Shown here: piece by piece, positions 28,320-57,352 of the stretch
Numbering within the stretch: the first letter of the stretch is position 1
Layout: the number at the start of each line of letters is the position of its first letter
DNA from: Octopus bimaculoides
Lineage: Eukaryota
NCBI RefSeq assembly: GCF_001194135.2
Contig: NC_068993.1
Location: 22,052,562-22,110,982 of the forward strand
DNA length: 58,421 bases
Direction: 5' to 3'
The notes under the pieces: model-generated
Database searches by the model: none
What the model saw: the letters and a program-made list of their open reading frames with translations, nothing else
What the model was told of the DNA's origin: nothing
Program-made: the position numbers and the translations under genes

Positions 28320-28539
28320 ATGTTGTCAACTTAATGTGACATTCCCATAAAAGAGAAAAATGCTATTGTCATTTAGCCCTAGGGAACACCGTTTCCTGTT
28401 GGACTTGACACATTTCCCGTGTCCTTATGTTTTCAAAGTGGAGATAAGCACCTCCACCCAGCAAAGCTAGAACCCAGAGACTAGTTTCAGAGTCATTGCT
28501 CATCATCAATCTGGAGTAGCATGGCTTGCTAGCTGTCGA
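28320..28539 (-). mobile_element. HHR-bearing short element, copy 1
   Basis: Homologous along its length to 34750-34975; 3' ~110 nt also matches the 36 kb and 57 kb copies. Confidence 0.8.
28474..28514 (-). ncRNA. Type I hammerhead-like motif (C3U variant)
   Basis: CCAGA-TTGATGA-TGAG(CAATGA)CTCT-GAAA-CTAG-T-C-TCTGG; stem I 5 bp, palindromic ACTAGT stem III. Confidence 0.65.
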
Positions 28540-28739
28540 TGCCTATCCACTTTTGAAAACATATATATTTCAAGTGCAATATATTCACTGATTTTTGAAA
28601 ATAGAAATAATATATGGCTTTGCTGGGTGGAGGTGCTTATCTCCACTTTGATGTGATTTTGTAGAATAAAGGTCTATCACATCAAAAGAGGCGATGAAAA
28701 TGCCTTTATTGGTATGTTTGGGGAGGTAGCTTAGGAGAT

Positions 28740-29640
28740 CCAGGTCATCCTTTACAATACTTGGTATTTATTTTAAGAGTATCTCAATGAAGTTGCTTAA
28801 TTTGTGTGTTTCACATTTTGGACCTGCCACACTTGGTCTCAGTTTGTGGTCAGTGGGGAGGTGTACAGTGATGCAGATTGAAGTGGACATTTTGCAAGCT
28901 TCGGTAATTGTTTTGCTCTTGTGAATTTCCGGAAGCCCGTAGAGGTTGCTGGGTTTGCCGTTAGGCCATTTCCATGTCGGCAAATGAGTGTATTTAATTT
29001 GGAAATTGTTGCTGATTGTTGGTAGTTGGCTATTCTTTCAGAGTTTTTGTATCGTTCCGTATCCATAATTACAACAGTACTACCCTTATCTGCTTCCTTG
29101 ATTGTGATGTCATGATTGGTTGGAACTGGTGGATGATTTCCTATTCCCTTTTACTGGTATTGAGTTTGGGTTTAGGTTGTGGTAATTCACCATAAGGGAA
29201 GTAGGATATGTAGTCACAAAATTTGTCCAGAGTTTTGTTCCTGCCTTTTGTAGGATTGTAATTGCTTTTATTGCGAACCATTGATTCGTCGTTATTATTT
29301 TCTTTATCAAAAAATTATTCTGTAAGGCGTAATTTACTGCAGAAATATGAGACACCATCATGTATTTCATTGAGGTTAGGGTACTGTGGTGTTGGAATGA
29401 ATTTTAATCCATTTGAGAGGATTTTAATTTGTTAGGTTGTCAGGTTTAGACTTGAAAGATTCAGTATTTTTGATTTTTTTCAGGGTTGGCATGTACCATC
29501 TAGTGTCGTAGACTCTGTTGTTTTGGCCTAAAAAATTATGGTTGTGATGTATGTGCCTTGTGTATCCTTATCAGACGGGTAGTCATGATGGGTATACTGG
29601 GCTTCGTATATTTCACCCCAGTGTCACTTTGATGGCATGC
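28740..29640 (-). mobile_element. Penelope-like element, N-terminal ORF and start of RT (pseudogenised)
   Basis: LSSLNLTT*QIKILSNGLKFIPTP, ITIKEADKGSTVVIMD, NLYGLPEIHKS and LRPSVAGP motifs typical of PLE ORFs. Confidence 0.9.
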
Positions 29641-29656
29641 ACTGCTCTCTCACTCA

Positions 29657-29665
29657 ATAATAATA

Positions 29666-29726
<61 letters not shown>

Positions 29727-29750
29727 TAATATTAATAATAATAATAATAA
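29657..29750. repeat. (TAA)n microsatellite
   Basis: Direct observation. Confidence 0.95.
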
Positions 29751-30029
29751 TAGTCAAGCTGAAGAGCGCGATTCGATTGTAATAAATATTTTATTGGTTG
29801 AATGATATTTCAACAGTAAGTCTGTCTTTGTCAAATCAAAATAAGAGGTGTTAAAAATTCAAAATTATAGAAATTTAAATTAAAGAATGAACGAGAGCAA
29901 CCAGCGTCCACACGCTGATGGAATGACATCATCAGTCATTAAGTTACAATTTTATAACAGGCGAAAAGAAAAAGAGGAAAGAAAAACAGAAGGAAGAAGA
30001 ATATTTAATCAAACAGTTTTGTATAAATT

Positions 30030-31080
30030 TGATGATATTCAGCTATCATTTTATTAATTCCTCCAAGGCGTGATGTTAATAACCCGTAAACATATTTCTC
30101 CTCATGCATTCTGAGAAGTGAAAGTGAAGCAGATTCAGATTATTTTCAGAGAATATACACTTTCAAATCTTTTTCAAAATTGCAGCCGTTTGAAACCAAA
30201 TGTCCAGCAAGTTCTGTCGAACTACTGTTATTATGCGTGACGTTGAATCTGTGCCCATTAAATCTAATCTTTTGTTTAATTGTTCTGTTGTAAAACCAAC
30301 ACAAATCAAGTTGGGTTTCGCGCATTCTGCCGCGTACACCAAATGGGAATATCTACCTGTCCCACCTTCTGTATAAATCATAACATTTCTGTTATGATTC
30401 TTGATGGAATTTACTTGACTCATGTTGCACAATGAGCAGGGCTTACCTCTCTTGCAGCTATTTTTTAAGTTACAACGTGCAGATACACCAATGTTCGTTT
30501 TCTTGGAGTCAGATATAGAGGTCAATAATTCTCTTATATTCTTATTCCGTCTAATGGCTACAATAGGTGACTGAGAAAATATCTGCTTGCAACGAGGTAA
30601 TTTTTTCGCACATGTTGGTGACTTTCTTGCAACACTTTTGAAAGGCCAGCGAAATTTAGGTACCAGTTAATCACTAAAGGAATTCTGCCATCTATGGTAT
30701 GGTGTTTGCTAATATTATGCGTGTAGGTTTGACTATCTTTGGTAATCTTAGCTATTTCGTTTGCTATTTCCTTTAATCGTGATTCACTTTAACGGCGATT
30801 GATATAATGGTGTACAAAAGCATTTGCATGTTTCCAATAATTCTCTGTCAGTACAAATTGGGATTTCGAATTTGACCGAATATGATGTAGATGATCAAAG
30901 CGGCGGTGGGGATAAATGTGGGATGACGTGGGCTTGCAAAATAAGACTGTCACTATTCTGACTCCAGAAAACTTAACTTTTGTGTCCAAAAATTCAGCGT
31001 TAGTTTTTGAAAAACTAGATGTAAATTTTATATTGGACTTAAAGCCATAGTTTTTGGTATAAGAGTCACATAAATGCATA
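30030..31080 (-). mobile_element. Penelope-like element, RT thumb plus GIY-YIG endonuclease (pseudogenised)
   Basis: IKFTSSFS..EFLDTKV..FCKPTSSHIY (RT C-terminus); LVYAAECAKPNLICVGFTTEQLNKR (GIY-YIG-like); EEKYVYGLLTSRLGGIN end motif. Confidence 0.88.
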
Positions 31081-31360
31081 ATTTTAACAAATACAATACA
31101 ATAGATGACAGAATTCCTTTAGTGATTAACTGGCACCGAAATTTCCCTGATCCCTCTTATCTCTTTTACTTCCTTTTTGTATTGAGTCACTAATGACATT
31201 AATTTTTCAGAGGTGTCGTCTGCATGAAACATAATATACAAGTCTATTAATAAACGTAGTACATTAAAAAAAAAAATGAGACTTCTTTGGCTGTCCGTCC
31301 ATATCGGCGTTGATTATACTTGTTCAGCAATCATCTCTGACAGGCTCGCATCTAGCCTAC

Positions 31361-31572
31361 CAGGCATTCTCTTGGTCGGCAGTATCGATGACGCCTGCTG
31401 CAAGTGAAGTTACTTGACGTAATGGAGAAGTGATGCTTATCGTGTCCTCTTTGTAGTCTTTCTTTTGTTTCTTCTCAATGGTTGGAATTACGAGCTTCAG
31501 TCGTCGTTGCCCTTCATCGCGCGCAGGGCCTTCTCCTCCCAGATATCTGAGGAGATAACGAAGTTCTTCATG
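31361..31572 (-). CDS. Coding exon (HEELRYLLRYLGGEGPARDEGQRRLKLVIPTIEKKQKKDYKEDTISITSPLRQVTSLAAGVIDTADQENA)
   Basis: 212 nt GC-enriched non-repeat island, ttag acceptor, gtaggc donor, 70 open codons, phase 0->2. Confidence 0.72.
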
Positions 31573-34500
31573 CTAACTTGAAATAATTAGGTAGCAATAC
31601 GTTTTCGGCCTTCGTGTCATACCATGTTGGGTCCTAAAAAAATACACTTTCAGTTTTATATTTCTAGGTAGAGAAAGAGTCACAGTTGGTACGAAAATGT
31701 AAATAGGTTTGCTTGATTACTACCGGTATCTACTTCAATATCAACAATGATGACTTATTGTCTTCAGAAACACATGCTGTATCGCAACAGTGGTGGATTC
31801 AGTGCATAGTGATATTTGCCCCAGATGTGTAGGCTATTCATTTCAAATCAAACCGACATTAACTTCGATTGATAACTTTCTAGATCCAGAAAGTATGAGC
31901 AAAATACTACCCCCAGATCTAGCCTTCTGCATACACGGCGTGTATGAAGTGGAAGGGTTTGGAAGCTGCCTATTCTCGTGGCTACATCAACTACAATCAT
32001 ACGTGTGTGTTTGTTTTCGTTCGCGGATTGGTTATTTTTATATACATTATATGTAAATGCACATGAATTTAGGGACAAATTCACACGCACACGTACATAC
32101 ATACACACATACATATGTGTGTGTACATATATATACACGTATGGGCAAGTATCTATATCTATGTCGATATTTATCATTTATGTATGCGTCAATTTGTATG
32201 CGCGTGTATTTTAAGAACATCGCAGAAGCGATACTCTATATACATCCGTACATCATGTACATCATACAGATATACATACACATTTTTATATTGTATCTAT
32301 GATTCAGGGAAAGATGAATACATTCTTCAAATAATTACAATACATCAAATATGGCTGATTTATCTCTGAGTCTCGTGCATTGCGCTCTAGCGATGTGCTA
32401 TCGTACAAACAAAAATGGGCATAGGCATGTTTGTGAATCTGACAGAAAACTACATTTCTTAATAATTTAAATAGATAAATGTGATAAAGATATATTAAGC
32501 AAACACACACACATACAGTATTTGTATTTCATCTTATTGAATCCTATTCTTCATAAAAGTGTGTGTGTGACTGTTTGCGTGTTTGTGTATGTATTCATGT
32601 GTCTCTGTATAGAAGAGTAAGTAATTAATCATCCAACCCAAAAATATTACGATCTACTAAGTCTCTCTTGGTCATAGTATGTTGCTAAGCTCTGTATGCC
32701 AAACTGCTTGTCTGATGCATTTGCCATATATTCCTAGGTGAGTTACAGTACAAAGTTCTAAGTGTCTTGCCTGAAGCCATTTGTCATAGAGTAGACTCCT
32801 GTCCTATGATATGATCACTCAACATCTTATCCACTCAATTATTTAATCTCTACATATAATGCCTTTTCTCTGCATTTCTGACTATAATCCCGTGTCTTAG
32901 TGTATGTACGTGTGTTCATGTATATAAGTATATTCTAAGTTATTATTTTTCACAGAGCATATCTGCAAGAACTGAAAATGCGGCGAATAAATTGCCATCT
33001 TCGACGGTTTCCAGCTATTTGAGTTCACCATACACCGTGCTCAGGAAAGAATTATATAGATTCAATGATTATTTTGTCTTCTCCTTAATGAAGACGGACG
33101 ACACTAACCAAATAATTTCATTATTTTTTTCAAGGACTGGTATTTATCTAGCGGGGAAATTAGTGTTTTAAGGAGCTCCTGAAGTCTTAATTTTAGGTTT
33201 AGATTCAGAGAAATTATTTTTATTTTCTTAATTTTTATGCCATCTCCTTCGGGAATAAGATATTAAGATGTTATATTTAATTTCCTCGAAAATTCTGTCT
33301 CTGCATACATACATACATACATACATATATACATACATACATACATTTCGTGTTACACTAAGAAGAGGTGTACTGTAACTTCGGATGTGTGTGTGTGCGT
33401 ATGTGTCTCTGTGTGTGTTTGTGAGTGTGTGTGTATTTGTGCGTGTGCGTGTGCGTATGCATATGTATATGTATGTGTGAGTGTGTACATGTGTGTGTAT
33501 ACACATGCACAAATACAAACATGCACACACATAGACACATATGTATATACAGTACTAACGAAAGTGACGTCTGGATAGAAATTTTTAGACTTTTAATTAT
33601 TATATTGCGACATACGTTTTTGTATCCCACTTGTGAGGATGTTTTTACGTTCATAGGATATTATTAAATATTATTTATAATATCTATGAATCTTGAACAT
33701 GCCTCTACTCTATGTGTATGCTTTATCATGCAATTAATATTAATAGTTTTTTTTTTACTATATTCATCCTAAGCAGTAAGGAGATCTACATATATATCCA
33801 TCCCATAGGATTACTCTGGAAGATTGGAATAAATGGTGGTAGCCGACACCAAGAAGTATAGGAGCTTTTATAAGTGCATTCAGAGGCATTGACCATATGC
33901 AAATTAAAAGGATATATATATATAAAAAGAGTGTACATGTACGTGTGTGTGTGTGTGCGCGCGCGCGCGCGCGTGTGGTCTTTAGGTAACGATCCGGAAA
34001 AGAAGTGCTCACTATCAATATAAATGTACATCATAACATTTTATTTATATTATTTTATTTATTGACCTGTCTGAAGGACCGCGTAGTACTCCAGAGATAC
34101 TGACCACATTTTAAATACCTCTTGTAGTTTCTCAGCTATGGCAATTTTGGACACAATAAAAAAAGCTACCCGTGACTCGTTGGGTCACCGGGAAATTTCG
34201 AATTTTGTTTCTTGGACATTTTTCTTTTCCGGGTTATTTCGCATGCTTTCAACAAAATTGACATCGAAATCACGCGTAAACGGCTCCTTTCTCCAGAAAA
34301 GGAAAGATTTGGCTGCTATTTCTTGCATGTCCTGCTACTACGTAACAGATATTTCAGGCTCTTTATCGCAAGTAGCTGTTACGTGGTTGCAAGGCGTGCT
34401 AGATATAGCAGCCAAATCTTTGGAGGTAAGATACGTTGAATGCACTAATAAAAAAAAAAACAGAGAAAAACTATTTCGCACCGAGCTTACGAACGGGACT

Positions 34501-34749
34501 TTTACGAGATATTTACCGTATTTTTAAAGTCATTTTCACTTTAAGATATCAGTCAAATATGCCAAAAAAAAATTTGTAATGGTATTCACTTTAAAATAAT
34601 TTTTAAAGACATTAACATATTGTCTGTTTAAGGAAAGCTAAAGCTAATATAGCAATAACATTCTTCCAATAATGTTACTGTTATATTTTTGTAGATCAGT
34701 GAATGTATTGCACTTGAAATTCTATAAGTTTTCAACAGTGGTTTAGCAG

Positions 34750-34975
34750 CGACATCTAGCAAGGCCAATCTACTCCACACTGATGAAGGTCAGTTACCCT
34801 GAACCTAGTCTCTGGATGCTGGCTTTGTTGTGTAGAGGTGCTTATTTCCCCTATTTGAAAACTTAAGGACACAGAACGCTTGTGTCTTGTAGCCAACTAG
34901 AAATGGTGTTTCGTGAGGCTAAATAACAGTAACATTCTTCCCTTTCGTGGGACTGGCACATTAAATTGGCAACAT
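34750..34975 (+). mobile_element. HHR-bearing short element, copy 2
   Basis: Colinear homology with the reverse complement of 28320-28539. Confidence 0.8.
34775..34815 (+). ncRNA. Type I hammerhead-like motif, mutated (GAAC for GAAA)
   Basis: CCACA-CTGATGA-AGG(TCAGTTAC)CCT-GAAC-CTAG-T-C-TCTGG. Confidence 0.6.
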
Positions 34976-35528
34976 GCCATCACTTTAATTCATAGTAATT
35001 TTCCATTATGCACCAGTTTGGCTAGGTAACATTGCAAGCAAGCAAGCATGATTCAAGGTGACTTTTAATGTATTATAGATCTATGGAACATAGTTTTTAT
35101 TCACGTAGGATTAGACTGACAGAAATACACCATGGAGAAACGAAAGTGAGAGACTAATTCCATGAATCAAAAATACATTCTAGATGAATAAGGAATTATA
35201 GAGGTACCTAATTTATAAATAGGACTCATCGATTTTAGTAGTCATGCTAAAAGTCACCTACGTTAGATGTGAAAACTAAGATAGCGTTTTAGAGAACCTT
35301 TATATTATATAATTATAGTTTATCAGCTTTAATGTGGATATAAATAAAATGCATAATTTCAAGTATCGGCTTTACCACTTTCTTAGTAACATTGTTTGCC
35401 ATACCTGTTTCTCTTTGTCTGTCTCTCTCTATCTCTGTTTTTAAGGCTTCTTTAAAAATTCATGCAGACTTTTTAATTATATATAATTCTCGTATAACTC
35501 ACGGTCATAAACTGTGACGAGGGCTTAC

Positions 35529-35597
35529 ATTATCTGAATCGGCTCCATTACGTGTCTGGTGCACATTCCATACCTCTGTTCTCTCCTTCATTCTGTA
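35529..35597 (-). CDS. Coding exon candidate (YRMKERTEVWNVHQTRNGADSDN)
   Basis: 69 nt, ctttag acceptor, gtaagc donor; only the phase 0->0 frame is open and it joins the 31572 exon. Confidence 0.55.
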
Positions 35598-36129
35598 CTA
35601 AAGTAATATTGTTGATAGTATCTGTGACTTTAGCAGTAGCTCATGTGAGAGCTTTAATCTGGTGATACAATGTTGTAAAACAATCAGTAGGCCGATAAGA
35701 GTGTCCGTTTAGGGTTAATGGCTTTCTAGAAATACTAAAAAGTTTCTTTTCTTTAAGTCACATAAAAAAATATTGTTGGCTAATATAAACCTTGATAAGA
35801 TAAAACGTTGGATAGCCAAAGGCGGGATGCTTGATATTTGGTCTTAGGAATCACAGTAGATACCGTATTAAACAATAACGACAGCATTTGTTAATAACAT
35901 AGTATTCTGCAGATTATATACGGGGCTGTTCTTATATCTGGGTGACTGAGAATGTAATTTTCTATTCAGAACGCAATACCGGCGCCGAAGTACAAAACTT
36001 TTGACTATCTTTCGTACCTGCTGATAATTCAGCATGATATGAGGCACAATGTGTATGTTTATATATATATATATGAGTATGTGTGTGTATGTGTGTGTGT
36101 GTGTGTGTGCGTACGTAGGCATCTCTGTA

Positions 36130-36158
<29 letters not shown>

Positions 36159-36165
<7 letters not shown>

Positions 36166-36564
36166 GTAGTATATTACCACTTAAGTGTGGCTGACCCCTA
36201 GGGGTGGATGTTACTGTTGCTTTTAGCCCCAGGAGGACATCTCCTCCAGCTGGCTTATCGACACACGACTGTGTCCTGTTTGCCAAGGGAGTTATCCCTC
36301 TCACCTCGACCAGCAGCACGAACGTATCCGGATTTCAGGGTTATTTCCCTTCGTCGGCGTTCGACAGCTGTCGNNNNNNNNNNNNNNNNNNNNNGATACG
36401 TTCGTGCTGCTGGTCGAGGTGAGAGGGATAACTCCCTTGGCAAACAGGACACAGTCGTGTGTCGATAAGCCAGCTGGAGGAGATGTCCTCCTGGGGCTAA
36501 AAGCAACAGTAACATCCACCCCTAGGGGTCAGCCACACTTAAGTGGCAATATACTACACTTTAT
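36159..36564. repeat. Near-perfect palindrome formed by two head-to-head HHR-bearing units (copy 3)
   Basis: Arms 36159-36328 and 36395-36564 are reverse complements at 169/170; centre CGACAG|CTGTCG at 36367/36368; 21 N gap in the right half. Confidence 0.9.
36319..36363 (-). ncRNA. Type I hammerhead-like motif (U4C variant)
   Basis: CGAACG-CCGACGA-AGGG(AAATAA)CCCT-GAAA-TCCGGA-T-A-CGTTCG; stem I 6 bp, stem II 4 bp, palindromic ATCCGGAT stem III. Confidence 0.78.
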
Positions 36565-36602
36565 CGTGCAGTTACTGTTAATACTTCATTTAGAGAATTA
36601 AC

Positions 36603-36634
<32 letters not shown>

Positions 36635-37117
36635 ATTAATAAACATACATATATGTGTGAGTGTATATATATGTATGTGTATATGTATGCATGTATGTAT
36701 GTATGTATGTATGTATGTATACACACATATGTATCTGCTCATTCTTTTCTTTGCTTGGTCCTTCTTTAAATACTAGCAGGAAAGTTTATCCTATTAAGTC
36801 CATTCCCTCTCTCAGTTCCACAAAACAACACACTGTTCGTGATTAAAGATTTCTCTAAGTATTTAAACCCTCATCACTCGAGACAAAATGCTCCTATTTT
36901 CTCTGTTACTTTAGATATAATATTAATCTTGTTACCATTTCGAATTAAAGAAAATGCATTGATTTAATTTTACAGCTGTAATATTTTTTTTATTATTTGA
37001 CTTTGCACATGTTAATTTCCTTAGTAGAAGCATACATTTCCCTATAGATTTCTCTGGCCACAAACTGTAAGGCCTGATGTTCATACGTGAATAACTTTAT
37101 TTATATGAATTACATCT

Positions 37118-37340
37118 GAAGGCGGCGAGCTGTCTGAGTCGTTAGCACCTCGGGGAAAATGCTTAGCGGTATTTCGTTCGTCTTTACGTTCTGTGTTTAA
37201 ATTCTGACAAGCTGACCTTGCGTTTCATCCTTTTAGGTGTGGATAAAATAAGTAACACTTGAGTACTGATGGCTGATTACGTCGGCCTACCTTCTCTCCT
37301 CGAACTTCGTGGCATTTTCCCAGAATTTGAGACCCATATT
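37118..37340 (+). mobile_element. tRNA-derived SINE (main family)
   Basis: GGCGGCGAGCTG..GTTAGCAC..AAATGCTTAGCGGTATTTCG. Confidence 0.87.
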
Positions 37341-37411
37341 AATTATATTTTACTTTCAGTATAAATATTCTTTTTCTTTATTCAGCATATGTCCATCAGA
37401 AACAGACTTAC

Positions 37412-37428
37412 ATATGGAATTGTTTTCT
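37412..37428 (-). CDS. Candidate 17 nt exon (KTIPY)
   Basis: tttttcatcatag acceptor, gtaagt donor, phase 1->0; splice signals only. Confidence 0.22.
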
Positions 37429-39155
37429 CTATGATGAAAAATGATTGACTACTTCTGTAAACCAATGATCAACACTTCCGTAAAAAAGTAAACCACAGAT
37501 TAATTTTCAGCTGGTTTATCATCCTTTACTAAATTGCTGTCTTTGTTGTCTTTTGCTACCAAGATTCTCAAGGTATATTAAAGGTTCGAACTGTTAACCA
37601 GCTCCACTGATGAGCTGACACCTTACAGCTTCTTCATTTGTGACCCCTTTTTTATCTTTAATTTATAACCTTGTTGACACACTGCTGACTTCTTTACGGA
37701 GTATTTTTATATTGAATATCTTGAAGTTGTTTTATTAGTTTGTTTCTCTTTGTTTTAGTGAGGATATGAAGTTTGGCCAAATTAAGCTGAAGTAATATTT
37801 GCCGATCGTTTTTACTTTGGTTGCTTACAGGACAGTATGTATTCTATTGGCAATTAGGTGGAAAAATTTTGGGTGTAAAATGTATCGTTATGTTAATGAA
37901 ATCGGCGTATACCGAGCCAAGAAATTTATACCATGCCAAGAAATCTAAAATACTTCATTGAGAATGAGAATACTCTATATCTAAACGACTAACTCTTGTC
38001 AAAAAGATGAGGATAAAAATCCGAAATTTAATTAATATAATTGCAGTAGTAGTTAAGTCTAAATTGTAGCAGCAGCATAATAATTTCGATTATTATATGG
38101 TACACCTGTGTATCCTATATACATCGCAAAGAGTCTACTCAGAAAGTTATATGGGTTTTCATAACCCCTAGTCACTTAGTGGACTCTTGACTCTAAATAA
38201 ATTTCTTATGACACACACAGATGATATGTTGAAACAGCTATACGCTACTGAGTTGAATATAGTAAATATTTCCTGCAGACCAACGGTGAGATAAAATCCA
38301 ATGCTGACTAGCAGGATTTGAACTCAGTTATTAATTAATATCATTAATTACTACTTAGTACTTTATCATCTCTGCCACCCTTACAGACCTGGTAATCGTT
38401 TCGCAATAAATTTTAATAGCAATGATAATGGTCTCAGATTTTGGCACAAGGCCAGTAATTTTAGGGAATTGGAGTTAATGACATAATTATATATTTTATG
38501 AACCAATTTTGGATGTTCCCGATATATCTAAGGACTGCACTTAACAGAGTTTCATATTATATATGAGAGAATTGATAAATTTCGTTGATTTGTTATTCGT
38601 TTTCTTTAGTTAAGATCTTGCAAGATCAATTCAAAAAGTGTTTCCCCAGCGCAGCGTAACAAGCGAGCTTGATAGTCTAAGTGGTGTCTAGACTATTGTG
38701 ATTTATAGGTCTTTGTAAAGATATAATTTATCATTCATGGTTTGATATGAACTTCTTAACTGATTAAGTCTAACGATATAACTTCTGATACACTTTAACA
38801 CGTATGACAGTCGTTAATTAAACTGTACATGGCTCTTAATACTCCAAGTTTACTGTCTCGTTCAGTCTCACATTCATTGATTTGCAATTGATGGGAATAC
38901 GTATTTTGTTTCAAATTGCGAAAGCCTTCGCTAATAGACAACGACATTTCAACACTAAAGTAATATGGCAACATAGAATATATAAGTAATAGTAGTTAGT
39001 TGTAATAATTGTTTTTGTTGTTCTAACAAATATATTCTATCAGTAGTTCATAATTTTATTTTGCCACCACGCTGTAGATTACATCACACACAATCTGTGT
39101 ATGTATGCATGTATGTATGCATGTATGTATGTATGTATGTATGTATGTATGTATG

Positions 39156-39190
<35 letters not shown>

Positions 39191-40768: not shown

Positions 40769-40774
40769 ATTCCT
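40769..40774 (-). CDS. Candidate 6 nt microexon (AGG AAT, RN)
   Basis: Long pyrimidine tract ..tttcatcttttacttttcag, then AGGAAT, then gtaagc. Confidence 0.3.
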
Positions 40775-41230: not shown

Positions 41231-41302
<72 letters not shown>

Positions 41303-45850: not shown

Positions 45851-47355
45851 CTGGCAATTTAATTATAATGATGCGAAGTAACTTTAAAATCAGAGAAACG
45901 TATAATAATAAAATATCAAATATCTGTTACATACGGATATTCACCATGCTGACAATATCCACATTCTAACATCATTTGAAAAAAAGAACATAGAAAAAAA
46001 AATATGAACCAAATTTGCATACTATTAAGATTAAATCTGCTACAATGTAAATTTTGAAAACTTGCTATAATTTGTGTAACAATGTTTTTTTTCCGGTGAA
46101 CACTTTTACTACATCAGCCAGTTTTCATTAACTTACTTGTTGGCTGATCACTACTTCAATCGATCAAGAACGATCAAGTTTCTCCATTGATACTATAAAT
46201 ATATAAATAAGGTAATAAACAGAGGAAAAGAATTCCTTCAAAGAGGTGTGAAAAAACATCCAATTCACTGGTACGATGGTTGAATACCACATAAATATGG
46301 GTATAATGCAAATTACAAACAATAAATCAATCAAATAGGGAGATACAATTGATAATCCAATAATTTATTTATATTATGATATAACATAATATACTATGAA
46401 TATAATATAATATAAAATAAACAATTATTGAAACAACCGAAAATCAACACTTTATTTCGACTTATATACATTTTTTTATATATATATATAAACAATTCCA
46501 TTCCCTTATATATATGTCATATCAGTGAAATATTGAGTAGATAGACAAAATTTATTATGAAAGAATTACTGGATTGTAAAAAAGTTATTTCAAATGCCCA
46601 TGTATTGTGAGCGTGAGTGTTAGCCACTCAACTGCATATCAATTGAACTAAAAATTAATAAACAACAAAATTATAACGGACAAACTAATTAATTAATTAG
46701 AATCTACAACTATCGAAATATATTTCTATATATCTCAAATAATATCAACCCAAACTCATTTATGTCTAAGACAATCTTTCGTTATTATAATAACATACAA
46801 CAATAATATATATGTGCCTATAATTAAGTATCAGGGCCTTAATCTATAAACTGTAATAAAACGCGTAAAAAGATACAATGACGATTATATTTTTAATATC
46901 TAATAACTCTTCTATCTATTTAAAGTTATTTATATATAAAGTTGTTTAAAGTAACTAATAAAAGTGTTCTATATTTATTGCTTATCGGAGAGAGAATTCC
47001 GTAATAAATACGATTAGAAACTTAACATAAGATTTCTTTGTTTACTTAATTTATCGCATGGAGAATTCCGTAATAAATATGAAGATAAATTTAGCGATAC
47101 ATACACTGTTACAAAAATACCCCATAGATATAGAGTTAGGCTATAATAGGGATATCAAAATATTACTAGTTTTTTTTAGTAGTAACGAATTGTTTATAGA
47201 ACAAGAAATGTATACAAATCGAAAGAAATTTTTGGTTTAGGTTTGTTTAAATACTGTTTCGTTATATTATATTATTTTCAGAGTATATTATTTTATATTA
47301 CAATATAAATAAATTATTGGATTGTCAATTGTTTCTCTCTATTTAATTTATTGTT

Positions 47356-47390
<35 letters not shown>

Positions 47391-49225
47391 NNNNNNNNNN
47401 NNNNNNNNNNNNNNNNNNNNNNNNNNNNNNNNNNNNNNNNNNNNNNNNNNNNNNNNNNNNNNNNNNNNNNNNNNNNNNNNNNNNNNNNNNNNNNNNNNNN
47501 NNNNNNNNNNNNNNNNNNNNNNNNNNNNNNNNNNNNNNNNNNNNNNNNNNNNNNNNNNNNNNNNNNNNNNNNNNNNNNNNNNNNNNNNNNNNNNNNNNNN
47601 NNNNNNNNNNNNNNNNNNNNNNNNNNNNNNNNNNNNNNNNNNNNNNNNNNNNNNNNNNNNNNNNNNNNNNNNNNNNNNNNNNNNNNNNNNNNNNNNNNNN
47701 NNATATATATATATATATATATATATATAATACATACAAATAGAGAACAAATAAAGTAAAAAAGGAGAAAAATGATTTGGAAAGAAATTTTTAAAAATAA
47801 AGATGCCCGAAATGCCCGATCTCTTGTGTATATAAGAGATCATACTCGCATATATCTAATCTTTTTATCTAGAATAAACCTCTAAAACAATTTACTAAAT
47901 ATTTTTTTTTTTATTCATTACCTTTCATCCAACCTGTACTAATGGAATGTTGATGTGCTTTTAGAGTCGTTTGATATCTACTTCTAGCTTGTTGGTGCCG
48001 TTTCTCAGTACACTTAATTATATCTATATTGCTATACATCTATATTAATTCTTGTCGTTATGGTTTTTATTACATGCTGGCCACTGGTAGGGTCGTTATT
48101 TTTTAATGATCTTTATCTTTAATCATGCACACACACACACGCACACACTCACACACATATACATCCATGCATATATACATATATATGTGTGTATGTGTGT
48201 GTGTATGTATGTGAGTATAGATGCGTGTGCGTGCGTGTGTGATCTTTGATATACACAAGAGGTCATGCATTTAGAGTGTCTTTATTTTTTAAAATTGCTT
48301 CCCAAATCATTTTCTCTTTTTTTTTACTTTATTTATTCATTATAGACATTCTTTGTGCGATACAAACCAAACTGTATGTTTTTGTACTATTACATAGATA
48401 CACTTACGTTTCCATGAAACTCATAATTGCAAAAAATCTGTTTAATATTTCTATTTAATTTCTCGTAGTATAACCTATATTTATTATTTAGTCTAAATGT
48501 AAATTATTGATATGTTTTTCAAATATTGATTTAGGCTTAAACAAGCCTATGTAGCTTAACAATTTTATTAAAACCATTAATCTAAATTGACTTCATAGGA
48601 AATTATTTTATAATTTTTCACTCGTACGCACGCATCCGTAATATATGTATTCCTTTCTGTTCCTTTCTGAGAGATTGTCTGTTTTCGAATTCTGCTTGCA
48701 TTTATTTATTAAATATTCCTCTCAAAGTATCTTTCAATATTCAGTAGAGAGGCTGTGACCAACGAACCTTACAATTATTTTTGATAACTTATGCGATGTA
48801 AAGAAGATATGTGTACATATACTTTCTCTTATACATAAGCATCGATATTTATGCATTCGAAATAAATTGCGAATATAGGTATGGTCTACTATTAAGCAAT
48901 ACGTTCATAAACAGGACCCTCAATACTTTTTGAGCTAGTTTGTCGATTACAAGAATGACAGTAAGGCATTCACATCAACATCTGTATGAAATTATTTTTC
49001 AAATATTCATTGCTAAGAAAACGTAAAAGTGATGTATTTAACATCAACGATTAACTTATGCCGAAAATGCGCCTGTAATAACAGATAAATTAATCAAAAA
49101 ATGTTCTTCTGAGATTTCATTAAAGAAAATAATACCCCATGATTATAAGGATTACGAAGAAAAATTACCATTTTAAATTTTCTTGGTATTTGTTTATATC
49201 AATCGGGGAACATTTAGTTTTGGCT

Positions 49226-49262
<37 letters not shown>

Positions 49263-49773
49263 CGTTCGACTTGAGTAGTTCCTGAAAAAACTTTATATTA
49301 TTAAACAATTTTTTCCAGCAAGTATTACAAATTATTATTTGTGAATCCTTTTGAACAATTGTTGAACAATAGCTGGAAGATTATCAACCACTAGAGGTGA
49401 TCTGATCCTGAGAGAATGTCTTGAACAACTACATATTCATACAACCATGTGTGTCATATCTACGCATCAGTGTAGAATTACAACATATCAATGTAAAATG
49501 TCTGTGCATGCGTGCGTGCGTGTGTGTGTTTGTTTGTGTGTGTGTGTGTGTATGTGTATGTGTGTGTGCAGGTATGAGTATTAGATGGAATTTGCACTTT
49601 TGCATCGTTAACTATAAAATTCAAACTCAAATGAAAACACTAGATTAAAGGAAACTGCTATTTCATGTACAGCAAATCACGTCATAAGAGAGAACATGTA
49701 GCATTAAACTCAGACGACACTCTTCTGACAATCAGAGAGCAACTGAACATTATTTGTTACCGTAATTGCTTAC

Positions 49774-49829
49774 TCTGCTTAGTTCCCTTTCATTGATAAT
49801 GATGTAATAACGAATTCCTTTATCGAATG
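49774..49829 (-). CDS. Candidate exon (FDKGIRYYIIINERELSR)
   Basis: 56 nt open frame, ctgcag acceptor, gtaagc donor, phase 1->0. Confidence 0.28.
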
Positions 49830-50967
49830 CTGCAGTACAAATGGCAGCTGTCCAGATGTCTTTTATGTTGATATACGATTTAATGAATATATATATAAGG
49901 AGCAGATACCACTATCTGAGTGAAGCTTGATACATTTCATACACTTTATAGAATAAAATACTTAAAAACTAACGTATTTTCAGCATTTCCAACCCGATAG
50001 CTGCGCATGATGTATAATCGAGATCGAAAGTATGTTTCTGTGTTAGTTTCTTTTTTTCCATGTGGCTTTATAGGAAATGTTGCATTGTAACGATATTATA
50101 TTGCTGTGTCACTGATAAAGAAACCTTTCTCAGCAATCAAACTATTTATTTCTTTTGTAGTGAAAGAAAGCAATTTTATATTGAACCTTTACCTCCGAAT
50201 ATTACATATTGAATCAGCCATTTACTTTTGATTCATTCTGACATTGCATTTGTCTGATGTGGAATTATAAGTCTAAAACCTCGCATGTGTAACATAGAAA
50301 AGCTTTTGCATCAAGTTTTATTATTGTTGCCTAATAATCTCATTGCATGGTCGTTCTATCCCATAAGATTTATTTACGTTAATCTGAAATTACATTAAGT
50401 CAAGCTTTTCTTTATGCACATCAACATTCATGTATTGCTTCAAGTTATATGTTTGCATCCTCAGACTTCTTTAGAAGGGGAAGAAGTTATAAAGGGTCCA
50501 GTAACTCAGTGTGCATGAAAATAATTTTCTTGATATGTATTCCAAAGATTACCCTACACTACCATCTGAAGTTTGAATACATGTTTTTCTTTGAGAAACA
50601 TCTATAATTTTCACGTTCTATAAACCATATTTAAATAGTTCTGTAATATTGCAGAGTTACCCTAGAAGAGGTTCATCAGTTATTGTTGTTGGTAAAATGC
50701 AACGGGTATGTTGCGTTTTTATTGGTTGTATGTTGATCTTGTTTAAACTTGTGTCCTCTGTATTTTTAAGAGAAACTGTAATCTCTAATTTATTCAGTTA
50801 TGCAAACTGAGAACCATTCTATCAATAGAAAATATATATATTTTACTCCAACCGAAGGATCTGTATTAAATTTAATGGCATAAATATAATTATAATTATA
50901 TGTGTGTGCGTATGTGTGTGTGTATACATATATATGTATGTATATATGTACGTCTATTATATATACC

Positions 50968-51005
<38 letters not shown>

Positions 51006-52017
51006 NNNNNNNNNNNNNNNNNNNNNNNNNNNNNNNNNNNNNNNNNNNNNNNNNNNNNNNNNNNNNNNNNNNNNNNNNNNNNNNNNNNNNNNNNNNNNNN
51101 NNNNNNNNNNNNNNNNNNNNNNNNNNNNNNNNNNNNNNNNNNNNNNNNNNNNNNNNNNNNNNNNNNNNNNNNNNNNNNNNNNNNNNNNNNNNNNNNNNNN
51201 NNNNNNNNNNNNNNNNNNNNNNNNNNNNNNNNNNNNNNNNNNNNNNNNNNNNNNNNNNNNNNNNNNNNNNNNNNNNNNNNNNNNNNNNNNNNNNNNNNNN
51301 NNNNNNNNNNNNNNNNNNNNNNNNNNNNNNNNNNNNNNNNNNNNNNNNNNNNNNNNNNNNNNNNNNNNNNNNNNNNNNNNNNNNNNNNNNNNNNNNNNNN
51401 NNNNNNNNNNNNNNNNNNNNNNNNNNNNNNNNNNNNNNNNNNNNNNNNNNNNNNNNNNNNNNNNNNNNNNNNNNNNNNNNNNNNNNNNNNNNNNNNNNNN
51501 NNNNNNNNNNNNNNNNNNNNNNNNNNNNNNNNNNNNNNNNNNNNNNNNNNNNNNNNNNNNNNNNNNNNNNNNNNNNNNNNNNNNNNNNNNNNNNNNNNNN
51601 NNNNNNNNNNNNNNNNNNNNNNNNNNNNNNNNNNNNNNNNNNNNNNNNNNNNNNNNNNNNNNNNNNNNNNNNNNNNNNNNNNNNNNNNNNNNNNNNNNNN
51701 NNNNNNNNNNNNNNNNNNNNNNNNNNNNNNNNNNNNNNNNNNNNNNNNNNNNNNNNNNNNNNNNNNNNNNNNNNNNNNNNNNNNNNNNNNNNNNNNNNNN
51801 NNNNNNNNNNNNNNNNNNNNNNNNNNNNNNNNNNNNNNNNNNNNNNNNNNNNNNNNNNNNNNNNNNNNNNNNNNNNNNNNNNNNNNNNNNNNNNNNNNNN
51901 NNNNNNNNNNNNNNNNNNNNNNNNNNNNNNNNNNNNNNNNNNNNNNNNNNNNNNNNNNNNNNNNNNNNNNNNNNNNNNTATATATATATACATACATGTA
52001 TGTATGTATGTGCATAT

Positions 52018-53535
52018 AACTTTCCATCCTACCCTTCACTTCTCTTGCACTATTTCCGACACCTCAGTCGCCTTTCTTGACATCTCGGTCAGCATTCATC
52101 ACTCCACTCTCACTACCTTTATCCACTACAAACACACTGACTCACACTCATACCTCAACTCTGCAGTGACAACCATGACATTAAGACTCAGTCTCAACTC
52201 ATGGCTCGCCACTTCATCCTACGTGCATATCCCCTTACCACTATCCACACCGCCCTTGCCAGTGTACGTTCCGTGGACCGTGCATCTGCTCTCTTCCCCG
52301 CACCCACACCGCCGTCACCTGTCTCCCGTTTCCCCTCACCTACCACCCCACCACTCTACCTCTCCAACGCATCATTCTCCGAGCCTTCCGGTGACTCCAG
52401 TCCGACCACTCCACTTGGCATATCTTCCTTAACCTCCCTCAATCGAGCCAACAACCTACGAGACCTCTTGGTCCGCAGCTTCTTCCCTAACCCAACACCC
52501 CAACCGGATTCCTTCCTCTGCTCCCGTCCACGCTGCCGCACTTACCCTTACCTCTTCAACACCACCCTCCTCACAGGCACCCATCATCGACCCTATCATA
52601 TCACTGACTCCTTCAACTGCACTTCTAGCAACGTTATCTACTACATCTCCTGCTCTCTCTGTCCTTCTCTATACATCAGTCAAATGAGACACCGCTTGGC
52701 TGATTGGTTCGCGGAACACCTCTAAGGCATCTGATTCGGCAACGACATCCCGGTCTCGCGCCATTTCCACTCTATCGGTCACTTTTTAAGACACCTGTCT
52801 GTGTTCGGATTGTCCTTGTACAGGGGCCATCGGGACTCCTGTCTTCGTCGTGAGCAGGGATTAATCTTCTCTCTTCGCTTCTTTGCGCCACATAGGCTCA
52901 ACTCTCCTCCCTTCTTCATCTGACCCTCCTCCTCTCTCCTCTCTTCCTCTCACACCTACTTTCTCCCACCCACCTCTCCTCTCTTGCCCTGACACCTACT
53001 TCCTCTCTTCAATCCTCCCCACCCTCTCCCTTCATCGTTACCCACTCCCTCGTTACCCCACCCCTACACATTCTAACCCCACCATCCCTATACATCCCAT
53101 CCCATCCACACCCTATCCCTTAAACCCCACACTTGATTCCCCCACTCTCGCCTCCACACCCCAACACCACCACACCACACACCACCATACCACACCACAC
53201 TCCATCATACCACCCCGCATACGCTAGCACTGACCCCTTCCCAGCACCTATACCATCATCCACGCACCTACACAAGCACACATAAACCCTTCAATGTCAC
53301 CAGCCCCCTTCTACACGCACATACACGCTATCACACACACATGTACGCGCACCTTCGCTTTGGGATCACCACTACTTTATTATCTCTACTACTTTCCTTT
53401 CTGTAGAAGAGCGTAGGCTCGAAACATAAAAGACTTTCTCACTTCCCGAGCGTTAAACTAATACATCTCTGTTTGTTGTTTACACACCCATCTTCGTCTT
53501 TTGTTTGTTTGTTTGTTTTTTTTTGTAAATTCTCA
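52018..53535 (+). mobile_element. Penelope-like element 3' part: RT thumb, GIY-YIG endonuclease, C-rich 3' region, HHR tail
   Basis: FHPTLHFSCTISDTSVAFLDISV..HYKHTDSHSYL; CSRPRCRTYP; NVIYYISCSLCPSLYISQMRHRLADWFAEHL; REQGLIFSL; stops and frameshifts. Confidence 0.92.
53397..53432 (+). ncRNA. Minimal PLE-type hammerhead-like motif, decayed
   Basis: CTTT-CTGTAGA-A-GAGC(GTAG)GCTC-GAAA-CAT-A-AAAG; A6 changed to U; ACAT is likely CpG decay of ACGT. Confidence 0.55.
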
Positions 53536-53830
53536 CTATATAGATGTGCATGTGTGTGCGTGTGTGTGCGTGCGTGTGTGTGTATGACAAATGAAAGACG
53601 GAAGATAAAATATACGAGAATTTATTATTAATCACGACAATTGTGGTTAATAATTAATTCTCGTATATTTGCCATATACCTAACGATCACTGTGGAAGTG
53701 ACTGCTTTACCAGTAAGCTACCAGGCGTAAACCATTCGTTTTATTATCCATTATATGTGTGTGCGTGTTTGTGTGTGTGTGCATGTATGTGCGGTATGTG
53801 TGTGCGTATGTGTATATATGTATGTATGAA

Positions 53831-53905
<75 letters not shown>

Positions 53906-54581
53906 ATGTATATACATATATACATATATACATATATGTGAGTGTGTGTGAGTGTGCGAGTGTGTATAGATACATATTTATACTTATATGCACGTATGTT
54001 TACATATATACACAGACATGCACACACGCGTTCGCACATGCAAATGAGATTGCGGGTGTTGGATATATGTTTATATAGATCATTTCATATTCTTTTTGAA
54101 CGCATCAATAAGTTCTTCAAATGTAAACATTATTCAGTGTTCAATTGTAGATTATTCATCAATTCATGATCGATTTAAAAACATCAGATGCATCTTTGTA
54201 CAGAAAAATGAAATGAGATATGAATATAGGCGTACAAATATATTTATATATATCTTGTTGAAAGAAGCCGACACAAGGCTGGGTGTATGTGTGAAATACA
54301 AAATTCAACCCATACATACACTTATCCAAACATTCAATATAGGTATAATTAAATTTACTCATTCATGATTAACATGCTGATCAATGCATATGTGAGTAAT
54401 ATAAATATATGTACACGAAAACACACCATGCTGTGAAGCAAGTGTATGTAATATGACATTTGAAGTTGCATACAGTATAAAGCATAATGGAATTCATAAA
54501 TACACATATTTATTTCGCTCGCGAGCACACTTACTCATATATATGTATGCATGCATGCATATAAGTATGTATGTATATAAG

Positions 54582-54622
<41 letters not shown>

Positions 54623-55898
54623 ACACATACACACACGTGCACTTATTGTCTCTCATACAGAGGATTTTTTCATTTCTCCTTTATCAAAACATCGATATTT
54701 TATCACCCAATTTTCACTCCGTATGTTGTACCCTCACTTTCTTTTTTACTTTCTATTATCTTTCAACTCCCACGCTTTTTCATTTTCTTCCGAACTTTTT
54801 CCTTATGTTTTTACTCATGTTTTTCTTTGTATTCCTTCTTTCATTGCCATCTATTCCAGTTCCACATGGTTTCATTCCATTATTTCATTCTTGTGTTCCC
54901 ATTTCCTCCTTTTCTCTGTGTTTAACCCTTTTCCTTTCTTTTTAATGTTTGCTGAATTTAGCATGTTATTTCTTCTAACAACTTAATTATCTCAAAATAT
55001 CGCTTAAGCTCCCGATAATATAACGCTGTGTAACAAACAGTTACAGTCAGAGCAATAGCAATAAAAGAAACAAGAAATAAACAAGCATATCAGATCAAAG
55101 ATCTTCATTTTTACCCAATACTAAACCAAGATAGAGGAACATTCGACCATAAAATTAAAGAATAATAGAATTTTATAGTCATTCCTAAATTCTGGATAAT
55201 TTCGTAATTCATAATAAGGATATTAACCAATAAACCTAACGAGGTAATGTTTTGTCATAATTTTTTACTCGTTTTTTTTTTCTCGTAGCTAACTGCATTT
55301 ATTGAATGACAAGATATTTTAATTGTCGTTTTATCTCACATCCAACATATAACTATGGAAGAAAATCAAGAAAAATTACTAAATAGTTCTTTTTGCATGT
55401 AAGTATTATACTTCAGAATAGACAATGGTAGTTATTGTAGAGAGCCAAAAGAATTTACCAGTTAATTAAAATCAAACACGTAATGAAGAAAATGCATCAC
55501 CAGTTTTAGCTCACTAATTATGTCTAAACATCGAAATCAATATAAGTTTTAATGTGGACATTAATGGGACGAGTGTCTGGTATTTGGCATGTATGGAGAC
55601 AACTCAGGACATATTCCAGGTATATTAGACTGGGGAACATGTAAAACATAACATATACGTTTTTAATTTTGAAAATATCTTTATATAATTTCCAGCAGCA
55701 AGTCTTTGCCTTTACTCCGCCTGCCTGTCAATTGTCATAGACCGAAAAGGAATATTTTAACTCTAACTTATCTACAATCCAGCAAATTTAGTAAAATTAT
55801 ATTTAACTGATGAGGACTGATATAGTAGAAGCATGTAGGAGTTGTTATCATATTATCGAGAAACAGACTCACTCCACTCAGTATGCCTCAAATCTTAC

Positions 55899-55958
55899 CA
55901 AATTCGATTTCAGAGTTCCTTGCCTCGTTTCCTTGACGGTTTTTATTACAAAACCGTC
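55899..55958 (-). CDS. Candidate 60 nt exon (RFCNKNRQGNEARNSEIEF in phase 1, or DGFVIKTVKETRQGTLKSNL in phase 0)
   Basis: aatttcag acceptor, gtaaga donor, two open frames. Confidence 0.35.
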
Positions 55959-56098
55959 CTGAAATTATATGCATACATATATATATATACATAGATATAT
56001 ATATATATAAGTACACACACACACNNNNNNNNNNNNNNNNNNNNNNNNNNNNNNNNNNNNNNNNNNNNNNNNNNNNNNNNNNNNNNNNNNNNNNNNNN

Positions 56099-56131
<33 letters not shown>

Positions 56132-56278
56132 CATTGCTTTGTTCCCAAAGTCCACATTTGTTTGATTAGCGGATATGTGAAACTCTCCGTAACTGTTTTT
56201 GATAGACTTTACGGGATCAATAAGAGTATTCTGTCACTCAGTTCGTCTCTGTCTCTCTTCCTTTCTTATATCTATTAC

Positions 56279-56311
<33 letters not shown>

Positions 56312-56711
56312 TACACGGTCTCACACACACTCACACACATATATGTATGTATGTATGTATGTATGTATTAATGTATGTACTCTGTGACAATTTGAATGCT
56401 TGTGTGGGTGTTCCATTATATGAAACACGTAATAAGTTATACTGAAAGATATTCTATAAACAAGTTTTACAAATATCACCATTAAATGTAAAAGCATCTG
56501 TACAGCTCGTATTCATGATTCAACGTTGTGTTCCTGACAGTCTAATTAGAAAAGTGAGGGAAATTCCAATGCCTATCATGTATATATTCCGTGAATGAAT
56601 ATTTGTCCTTTCTTGGAGCCTATTTCTGATTTGTAAGTCAATTATAATCAGCTAAAAAAGCTAGTTGCAAGAAACCCACTTTAGTCACGAAAGCACTTCG
56701 AATTACTATAC

Positions 56712-56765
56712 CTTTGTGATGCCAAACGATATAAAGATGTGGCAAAACGTGCTCGAAATAGCAGT
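56712..56765 (-). CDS. Candidate 54 nt exon (CYFEHVLPHLYIVWHHK in phase 1)
   Basis: gtctttcag acceptor, gtatag donor, all three frames open. Confidence 0.28.
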
Positions 56766-56994
56766 CTGAAAGACTCAGAACGCGTGTATATATTCACGCA
56801 GAGATTTGGCTATGTATGTAGGAATGTATGTATGTATGTATATATGTATGTATGCTTTTGCCCCTATGTGTTCGAGCATGTGTCTGATCCAACCAATAAA
56901 TGTTCCTCTGTTTATGTTTTGCCAGCAAAATAGTAAATACATTCAAAGAAGACATTATTCTTTAATAATTATATTTCTTAAAGAGAGAGTTAAA

Positions 56995-57061
56995 TTATAT
57001 TAAATCTCTGAGCGAGAGATAAACACTAACAGTACGAAATCGTAAAATATATTTGCCAACT
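56995..57061 (+). repeat. 67 bp direct repeat, left
   Basis: 63/67 identical to 57353-57419. Confidence 0.92.
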
Positions 57062-57352
57062 AAATGTGGTGGTCCTATAGAGGACGATGTTACTGTTGTT
57101 TTTAGCCCCAGGAAGACATTTTCTCCAGCTGGCTAACGACACACAGTCTGTGTCCGATTATAATTTGCGCGGGAGATCATCGCTTCCATCTCTAGCCTTA
57201 TGTGACACACACAAATCCGGGTTTCTGGTTGGCTACCCATCTTCAGTGTGTGTTAATCACTGGCTAGTGATGGAGAACTCATTCCACTCGTAAAATACTT
57301 TATCCTTTTTCTAGCGACTCACTGTCTCTGATCTAGTAAAGTGAGAGATAAG
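57047..57352 (-). mobile_element. HHR-bearing short element, copy 4
   Basis: GATGTTACTGTTG.TTTTAGCCCCAGGA.GACAT.T.CTCCAGCTGGCT shared with the palindrome arm; HHR at its 5' side. Confidence 0.82.
57207..57253 (-). ncRNA. Type I hammerhead-like motif with canonical core
   Basis: ACACACA-CTGAAGA-TGG(GTAGCCAA)CCA-GAAA-CCCGGA-T-T-TGTGTGT; stem I 7 bp, stem II 3 bp, near-palindromic stem III, AUU cleavage triplet. Confidence 0.75.

Follow-up and report, generated by a model that had tools for sequence, protein, structure and literature searches.

A short hammerhead-bearing repeat family in Octopus bimaculoides is probably a retrozyme-like element mobilised by Penelope-like elements

Four loci within a 58,421-nucleotide stretch of the Octopus bimaculoides genome (assembly GCF_001194135.2, contig NC_068993.1, positions 22,052,562 to 22,110,982 of the forward strand; hereafter the window, numbered from its first letter) carry copies of one short repeat family, five copies in all by self-BLAST. 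The unit has four parts, namely a leader of 60-95 nt, a type I hammerhead ribozyme (HHR), a small hairpin and a 3' domain of ~110-170 nt. We consider it probable, at roughly two chances in three, that the family is a short, non-coding, non-autonomous and retrozyme-like octopod retroelement that depends on Penelope-like elements (PLEs) and is kin to the animal non-LTR (long terminal repeat) retrozymes and to elements derived from the pseudo-LTRs (pLTRs) of PLEs. It is a further example of a kind known from other animals, with no new kind of mechanism. The copies and the sequences attached to them are as follows.

28307..28592, minus strand: copy c1 (subfamily A), one 286-nt unit running from ATCAG to CACTTTAA (nhmmer E=2e-74)
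28617..28651, plus strand: inverted copy of c1 segment 28467-28433, 35/35 perfect (BLAST)
34695..34988, plus strand: copy c2 (subfamily A), one 294-nt unit (nhmmer E=7.6e-77)
36159..36373, minus strand: left arm of the head-to-head pair c3 (BLAST and sequence reading)
36374..36394, no strand: assembly gap of 21 N beside the palindrome axis of c3
36395..36564, plus strand: right arm of c3 (BLAST)
36565..36603, plus strand: 3' extension ('tail') of ~39 nt found on the right arm of c3 only, followed by (TA)n
56979..57419, minus strand: c4 insertion of 441 nt (direct repeat and flanks read)

The initial annotation of this DNA had proposed that these four loci share a 3' domain, and this was borne out. 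A 24-base pattern for the domain, GGCTAAAN{3,5}CANNARCATN{16,24}CACANTNANNTGRNAA, gave five matches in the window (28323-28378, minus; 34917-34972, plus; 36174-36228, minus; 36495-36549, plus; 57053-57107, minus) against none in 100 shuffles, and nhmmer, run with filters off and a hidden Markov model built from the family alignment, matched only the same copies. Sequence identity in BLAST is 78% over 308 nt between c1 and c2, 99.4% over 170 nt between the two arms of c3, and 76-81% across 109-160 nt between the c3 arms and c4. The existence of at least two or three subfamilies (c1/c2 as subfamily A, c3, and c4), as had been suggested, is supported.

The length of 210-230 nt first given to the element has to be revised, since units measure 286-355 nt. 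They are delimited by ATCAG at the 5' end and CACTTTA(A) at the 3' end, and the 5' boundary lies ~60-95 nt upstream of CGACAGCT. The motif CGACA(G/T)CT, previously taken as the start of the element, is internal: homology between c1 and c2 spans 308 nt, ending upstream of ATCAG and downstream of CACTTTAA, and a unit start of the form TAGATCAG.GA is common to c2 and c4. Copy c3 has a GC content of 0.52, the other three 0.39-0.41. No open reading frame (ORF) is conserved among the copies, the frames of c3 and c4 differing and all closing early, and blastx of the family against octopod PLE proteins gave no match. These results support the copies being non-coding, in agreement with the initial annotation.

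The hammerhead motifs occupy a homologous position across the diverged copies and were read as follows.

28474..28514, minus strand: c1 motif, CCAGA-UUGAUGA-stem II-GAAA-CUAG-UC-UCUGG
34775..34815, plus strand: c2 motif, CCACA-CUGAUGA-AGG..CCU-GAAC-CUAG-UC-UCUGG (relaxed descriptor)
36363-36319, minus strand: c3 left-arm motif, core CCGACGA (U4C)
57207..57253, minus strand: c4 motif, ACACACA-CUGAAGA-UGG..CCA-GAAA-CCCGGA-UU-UGUGUGU (strict descriptor)

When CUGANGA, a stem II of no fewer than 3 bp, GAAA, UH and a 5-bp stem I were all required (strict descriptor), the window gave one match, in c4 (57251-57209, minus), with 0.01 matches expected; a relaxed descriptor matched c2, c3, c4 and one stray, with 0.23 expected. 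Family and motif together are far above chance expectation. The stray (15441-15496, plus; UUGAUGA ... GAAC) lies outside the family copies and is within chance expectation. The earlier claim of a hammerhead in each copy therefore holds for the motif and its homologous placement, but the core is fully canonical (CUGAAGA ... GAAA ... UU) in c4 alone: c1 combines C3U with a U.U at the base of stem II and fails the descriptor scan, and c2 carries A15.1C and one stem I mismatch. Helix I is open-ended and helices II and III are closed. Direct reading confirmed the pairings quoted in the initial annotation, which differ between copies yet stay paired: stem I as CCAGA/TCTGG, CGAACG/CGTTCG and ACACACA/TGTGTGT, stem II as AGG/CCT, AGGG/CCCT and TGG/CCA, and stem III as ACTAGT, ATCCGGAT and ACCCGGAT. 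Stems I and II are paired in every copy, bar single mismatches, and helix III consists of 1-2 bp and a palindromic loop.

Helix I is lengthened by pairing of the leader, including the CGACAGCT motif, with the sequence that follows the cleavage site, and in c4 this extension reaches ~22 bp with interruptions. Relative to shuffled sequences, the fold of the HHR domain has a z-score of -5.65 in c4 (0/200 shuffles as good), -3.0 in c3, -2.0 in c2 and -0.6 in c1. Two c3 molecules co-folded into the classic double hammerhead, with helix III formed by AUCCGGAU/AUCCGGAU as an 8-bp duplex. Judged from their cores, the hammerheads are plausibly mostly decayed in the copies here, with cleavage still conceivable for c4 alone. 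The motifs have the 'canonical' metazoan type I architecture, unlike the helix-III-less 'min-HHR' of most PLEs (PMC4209133). In min-HHRs helix II is long (6-8 bp), A9 is followed by an additional base, there is a G10.1-C11.1 pair, and helix III is minimal or missing (PMC4209133). In the octopod motifs, by contrast, helix II has 3-4 bp and begins with A-U or U-A, the bulge is absent and helix III is palindromic.

The 3' domain is given here for c4.

57053..57155, minus strand: c4 3' domain, comprising P2, P3/P4, a single-stranded GGCUAAAA.CAACAGUAACAU stretch, P5 and P6

P2 is an invariant hairpin (GACACA/UGUGUC), P3 (AGCC/GGCU) encloses P4, the stretch GGCUAAA..CA..ARCAU is conserved and unpaired, and P6 is an AC-rich hairpin (CCACAUUUAGUUGG in c4); single-sequence folds agreed on this P2-P6 layout. 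Changes on both sides that preserve pairing were found at 17 of 38 hand-defined pairs, about 14 of which are sound because three in P3 reflect a one-base register slip in c1. They include 4/5 pairs of stem I, 2/4 of stem II and 2/3 of helix III, and P4, P5 and P6 each show compensatory changes between subfamilies. Shifting the 3' partner by 1-3 nt lowers the paired share of cells from 91% (128 of 140, all helices together) to 26-49%, a comparison that is biased towards pairing by helices hand-defined from the very sequences tested. With MAFFT alignments as input, RNAalifold reached only -9.8 kcal/mol, a poor consensus caused by indels that shift subfamilies A and B relative to each other. That a PLE ORF begins with the 3' domain was rejected, there being no conserved frame and no blastx match to octopod PLE proteins.

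The manner in which the copies are inserted is what links the family to PLEs. The c4 insertion consists of an 83-nt 3'-terminal piece (57419-57337), CTAG and a full unit (57332-56979), and thus contains an 82-nt direct repeat with 91.5% identity (BLAST). This 1.23-unit partial tandem is enclosed by a single target-site duplication of 7-8 bp, (A)AGAAATA (57427-57420 and 56978-56972); as more than one unit stands between the two copies of the duplication, more than one unit was inserted in a single event. Copy c3 consists of two inverted arms set head to head within a (TA)n tract, both of them 5'-truncated at a self-complementary 12-mer, CGACAGCTGTCG, at which they are joined. The 12-mer is native to the left arm (36362-36373), its centre is the axis of the palindrome, and the left arm ends with CACTTTA directly against (TA)n. 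The tail is one-sided, being confined to the right arm; it is homologous to the extension of c4, and the alignment of the two reaches 36605/57001. PLE insertions are known for truncated 5' ends, partial tandems, a neighbouring inverted copy that is itself 5'-truncated, microsatellite targets and a tail of 30-40 bp that is often present at only one end (Craig 2021, PMC8557442). Copies c3 and c4 show the Penelope-like mode of insertion as it is described in PMC8557442 and PMC11167929. For c1 and c2 the search for a target duplication gave nothing clear. It is from this insertion anatomy alone that we infer mobilisation of the family by PLEs.

The gap at 36374-36394, the only one that meets a copy (those at 47391, 51006 and 56025 fall between loci), begins 6 nt beyond the axis, and the right arm restarts within helix III. 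Were the arms symmetrical, the gap of 21 N would stand for 33 nt of right-arm sequence that make up most of the HHR there. Continuity of c3 across it is plausible, if unproven, and since the gap hides the HHR of the right arm, one sequenced hammerhead is counted at this locus and not two. At c1, the 35-nt inverted piece lies 24 nt upstream of the unit, between it and the 3'-truncated ORF of a PLE remnant (PLE-A, described below), whose homology runs to 28642 and shares ~10 nt (CAAAGTGGAG) with the inverted piece. A template switch may have produced the piece. That c1 interrupts the PLE-A ORF was rejected, no continuation of the ORF lying downstream. No PLE coding sequence adjoins c2, c3 or c4.

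In several respects the family resembles the non-LTR retrozymes of animals, which are non-coding tandem units of 150-450 bp with a type I HHR, are probably mobilised by PLEs, and have low GC and target duplications of >4 bp (Cervera and de la Pena 2020, PMC7229834). Those of Xenopus and other vertebrates derive from PLE pLTRs (Li, Clavereau and Pollet 2026, preprint 10.64898/2026.07.22.740005). The octopod family shares with them the unit size, the type I HHR, a small palindromic helix III suited to dimeric cleavage, a strongly self-paired RNA, and, as in PMC7229834, low GC, a target duplication (7-8 bp) and PLEs in the same window. Retrozymes are further defined by having no ORF, LTR, primer-binding site or polypurine tract; the octopod copies have no conserved ORF, and no search was aimed at the latter two. 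The description as retrozyme-like is upheld by unit size, HHR type, GC, target duplication and insertion anatomy but not by arrangement: retrozymes form direct tandem arrays, from dimer to multimer, expressed as circular RNA, whereas the octopod family is present here as single units, a 1.23-mer and an inverted pair, with no direct double HHR.

The pLTR hammerheads of PLEs are a second point of comparison. They number thousands of solo motifs per genome, occur as opposite-strand pairs 100-700 bp apart, belong to families rich in compensatory changes, and have low or dimer-dependent activity (PMC4209133). The octopod motifs are similar in being type I HHRs tied to PLE-type insertions, in their opposite-strand pair and in their compensatory changes. 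A close parallel in layout is Poseidon of Anolis carolinensis, in which an HHR lies ~90 nt upstream of an AC-rich stem-loop that is the internal start of reverse transcription (Frangieh 2024, PMC11167929). Two start sites for reverse transcription define an optional tail of 30-40 nt, and inverted pairs arise because both DNA strands are cleaved and extended at AT-rich sites; insertion in vitro does not require the HHR, which is assisted by protein (PMC11167929). The octopod order of HHR, structured RNA and AC-rich stem-loop, and the AT-rich targets, are alike in description. The Poseidon module overlaps the start of the ORF, with its reverse-transcription start ~90 nt from the cut, whereas the octopod module is non-coding and ends 166-178 nt from the predicted cut, or up to ~235 nt with the extension.

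Type I hammerheads whose weak helix III makes dimers the favoured form also occur in Schistosoma Sm-alpha and newt satellite 2, non-coding repeats that are short and either dispersed or arrayed in tandem. The head of Sm-alpha resembles a tRNA and is of the polymerase III type. No such head was found on the octopod element, and its likeness to these repeats is again one of description. Both of these hammerhead repeats are cited in PMC4209133.

The search for relatives was extended to 94 kb of other octopod DNA, namely five loci of the PLE-A type from O. sinensis, O. bimaculoides and Argonauta hians, reached through the repaired N-terminus of PLE-A (15 octopod proteins). This DNA contained no copy of the family, so the impression that the element is abundant is unsupported. 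Use of the antisense ORFs of c3 and c4 as protein query returned one O. bimaculoides ORF (P0016, 97%), a 54-residue UniProt entry that is the antisense translation of a c3-like copy and the sole further trace of the family. Two metagenome scans with 3'-domain patterns found nothing, and the ORF of the second PLE remnant of the window (PLE-B), used as a protein query for further cephalopod DNA, gave no matches. There was likewise no similarity between the family and the two window PLEs or the five octopod PLE loci by nhmmer, BLAST or blastx, with one PLE lineage sampled. In the literature searched there is no report of a retrozyme or HHR repeat family in cephalopods, and cephalopod hammerheads figure there only as an Rfam count for the giant squid genome.

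The Argonauta hians locus L003 (GCA_054771915.1) contains a strict type I hammerhead match of another family at 18910-18945 (minus). It reads CTCTAC-CTGAGGA-UUUUUAAUAAA-GAAA-CGCG-UU-GUAGAG. Its stem I has 6 bp, its helix III is palindromic, and beyond it come an AC-rich stretch and, ~60 nt downstream, a (TA)n tract.

A number of observations weigh against the interpretation of the family as a PLE-dependent, retrozyme-like element. No autonomous PLE with the 3' domain or the HHR was found among the window PLEs and the five octopod loci, so that the proposal of PLE mobilisation has the insertion anatomy behind it but no partner. Three of the four cores are altered at normally invariant positions, including that of the youngest-looking copy, c3, the centre of which is moreover broken by the assembly gap. 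No hammerhead model of Rfam reached its gathering threshold anywhere in the window, the only Rfam search that covered c2, and at E<=10 none matched c1, c3, c4 or the isolated motifs of 81 nt (c4) and 74 nt; the Rfam check proposed in the initial annotation thus scored no copy. The covariation is suggestive and not statistical, because it comes from only four independent sequences, which also served to define the helices. Similarity of the leader between subfamilies is weak, with z=3.4 for c2-c4 and no significance for c1-c4. Lastly, nowhere in the window do two HHRs stand in a direct tandem array, so unit-length or circular RNA could not come from any of these loci. Among other Rfam candidates, a SNORD109A-like match to the UGAUGA/CUGA strings of the core (17.7 bits against a 35-bit cut-off) and weak microsatellite 'miRNA' matches were rejected.

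The copies might instead be by-products of an autonomous PLE, either as a module of the pLTR-to-ORF junction copied from the first reverse-transcription start or as extreme 5' truncations. Anolis Poseidon has its HHR at this junction, with reverse transcription starting ~90 nt beyond the cut and the parts in the same order as here (PMC11167929). In c1, c2 and c4, as in Poseidon, there is an AUG within or beside the core, c1 adjoins a PLE ORF fragment, and solo PLE-type HHRs in animal genomes are mostly thought to be truncated PLEs (PMC4209133). However, the frame opened by the AUG closes after 17-49 codons, at different places, the c3 and c4 frames are not conserved, and the domain varies by compensatory pairs and not by codons. 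The 3' end of c4 leads into a leader (CACTTTA-CTAG-ATCAG) and not into an ORF, and the one 5' end common to c1, c2 and c4 is not expected of random truncation. The domain is carried by no PLE examined. The initial annotation would have given up its own proposal had all copies proved to be plain PLE ends, but no continuity or sequence identity of the copies with those PLEs, which sample one lineage, was found. We regard a by-product origin as unlikely, and prefer a PLE-dependent element in its own right.

An ordinary SINE (short interspersed nuclear element) mobilised by a LINE (long interspersed nuclear element), without any link to PLEs and with a hammerhead-like motif that is leftover or coincidence, would accord with the SINE-like unit size, with the hundreds of unclassified SINE families in octopus genomes (PMC13282606) and with the C-box/D-box-like strings behind the weak SNORD109A match. 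It is nevertheless very unlikely. ARAGORN found no tRNA gene in the window and no tRNA-like head on the element, and Rfam reported no 5S or 7SL match at gathering score in the whole window; 'SINE-like', as the element was first called, is therefore the wrong label. Runs of T4-T5 within the 3' domain would terminate RNA polymerase III, there is no likeness to the LINE remnant (8799-9985) or to anything else in the window, and the stems that flank the core covary. The inverted pair with its one-sided tail and the insertion of more than a unit are traits of PLEs and not of LINEs. That the palindrome and the partial tandem were misassembled from a gap-rich short-read scaffold, and that the resemblance to a ribozyme is due to chance, is extremely unlikely, even with 12 gaps in the window, one of them at the centre of the palindrome, and with the trouble that complex PLE insertions cause short-read assemblies (PMC8557442). 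The arms of c3 differ by one base and the tail, and so are not a simple duplicated read stack; the repeat copies of c4 are 91.5% and not 100% identical; and chance is excluded by the motif statistics (0.01 and 0.23 expected) together with the homologous placement in diverged copies.

The interpretation favoured here, a non-autonomous element dependent on PLEs, also draws some support from the two PLE remnants that share the window with the family, one of them abutting c1. In the mechanism that we propose, element RNA would be copied by the reverse transcriptase and GIY-YIG endonuclease of an autonomous PLE. The 3' domain probably recruits the reverse transcriptase: the PLE enzyme would recognise the structured domain and start the cDNA within the RNA, at the AC-rich P6 or immediately beyond it. 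The optional tail could come from the choice between two starts, one at CACTTTA and one ~40-65 nt downstream of it; the inverted pair from priming on each of the two strands of an AT-rich target; and the partial tandem from copying of multimeric or circular RNA, or from template jumping. Multimeric transcripts would be trimmed to unit length by the hammerhead, either as a dimer or assisted by protein.

The remaining features of the window include the two PLE remnants.

28642-31500, minus strand: PLE-A remnant, degenerate, a partial tandem
51979 to ~53500, plus strand: PLE-B remnant, Penelope/Poseidon-like (FLD..KPTDSHSYL, CX2C, GIY-YIG-like YYISC...)
6832-7474 and 11613-11999, minus strand: two mariner/Tc1-type transposase remnants
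8799-9985, minus strand: LINE reverse-transcriptase remnant (RVT_1, E=1.3e-7)

PLE-A is arranged as the C-terminal part of the reverse transcriptase with GIY-YIG (~31500-30163, stop at 30163), an untranslated region with (ATT)n, and the 5' part of the ORF (29509-28642), which comprises the first ~290 codons and ends in motif 1 of the reverse transcriptase. Its nearest relatives are 'uncharacterized' DUF8422 proteins of O. bimaculoides, O. sinensis and Argonauta. The start-codon region (29440-29500, minus; also upstream of the genes at loci L001 and L004) reads ACAC(C/T)AGATGGTAC..CCAACCCTGAAAA and resembles the c4 hammerhead (ACACTGAAGATGGGTAGCCAACCAGAAA) over ~30 nt, without statistical support. 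No HHR and no CUGANGA box were found at the PLE-A ORF start in six copies. The 5' part of PLE-B is lost in the gap at 51006-51978 and its 3' region is long and CT-rich; it also has a hammerhead-like remnant, CTGTAGAAGAGCGTAGGCTCGAAAC, near 53402-53426. Several of the 12 gaps in the window, including those at 15194, 47391, 51006 and 56025, abut TA, CA or similar microsatellites, which fits a short-read scaffold. Repeats of the window match O. sinensis repeats at 85-92% (BLAST).

About 12% of octopus genomes is annotated as 'SINE', most of it unclassified (PMC13282606), and recognition of some short octopus repeats as hammerhead-bearing, PLE-dependent elements would improve the annotation of cephalopod repeats. 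The family would also extend the association of retrozymes and PLEs to cephalopods, a class without such a report in the literature searched. More tentatively, P2-P6 and the GGCUAAA..CAACAGUAACAU stretch may constitute the signal for a cephalopod PLE reverse transcriptase with two internal starts, the family being a minimised PLE template of ~300 nt; we consider this possible, although on the doubtful side. If true, the c3 locus would preserve in the genome the trace of target-primed reverse transcription begun on both DNA strands, and the family would define the RNA features that determine PLE mobilisation in trans, the mapping of which has hitherto been confined to one lizard element. With a ribozyme, a compact 3' domain and clean insertion signatures, the octopod family may offer a natural system for the template needs of PLE reverse transcriptases in trans.

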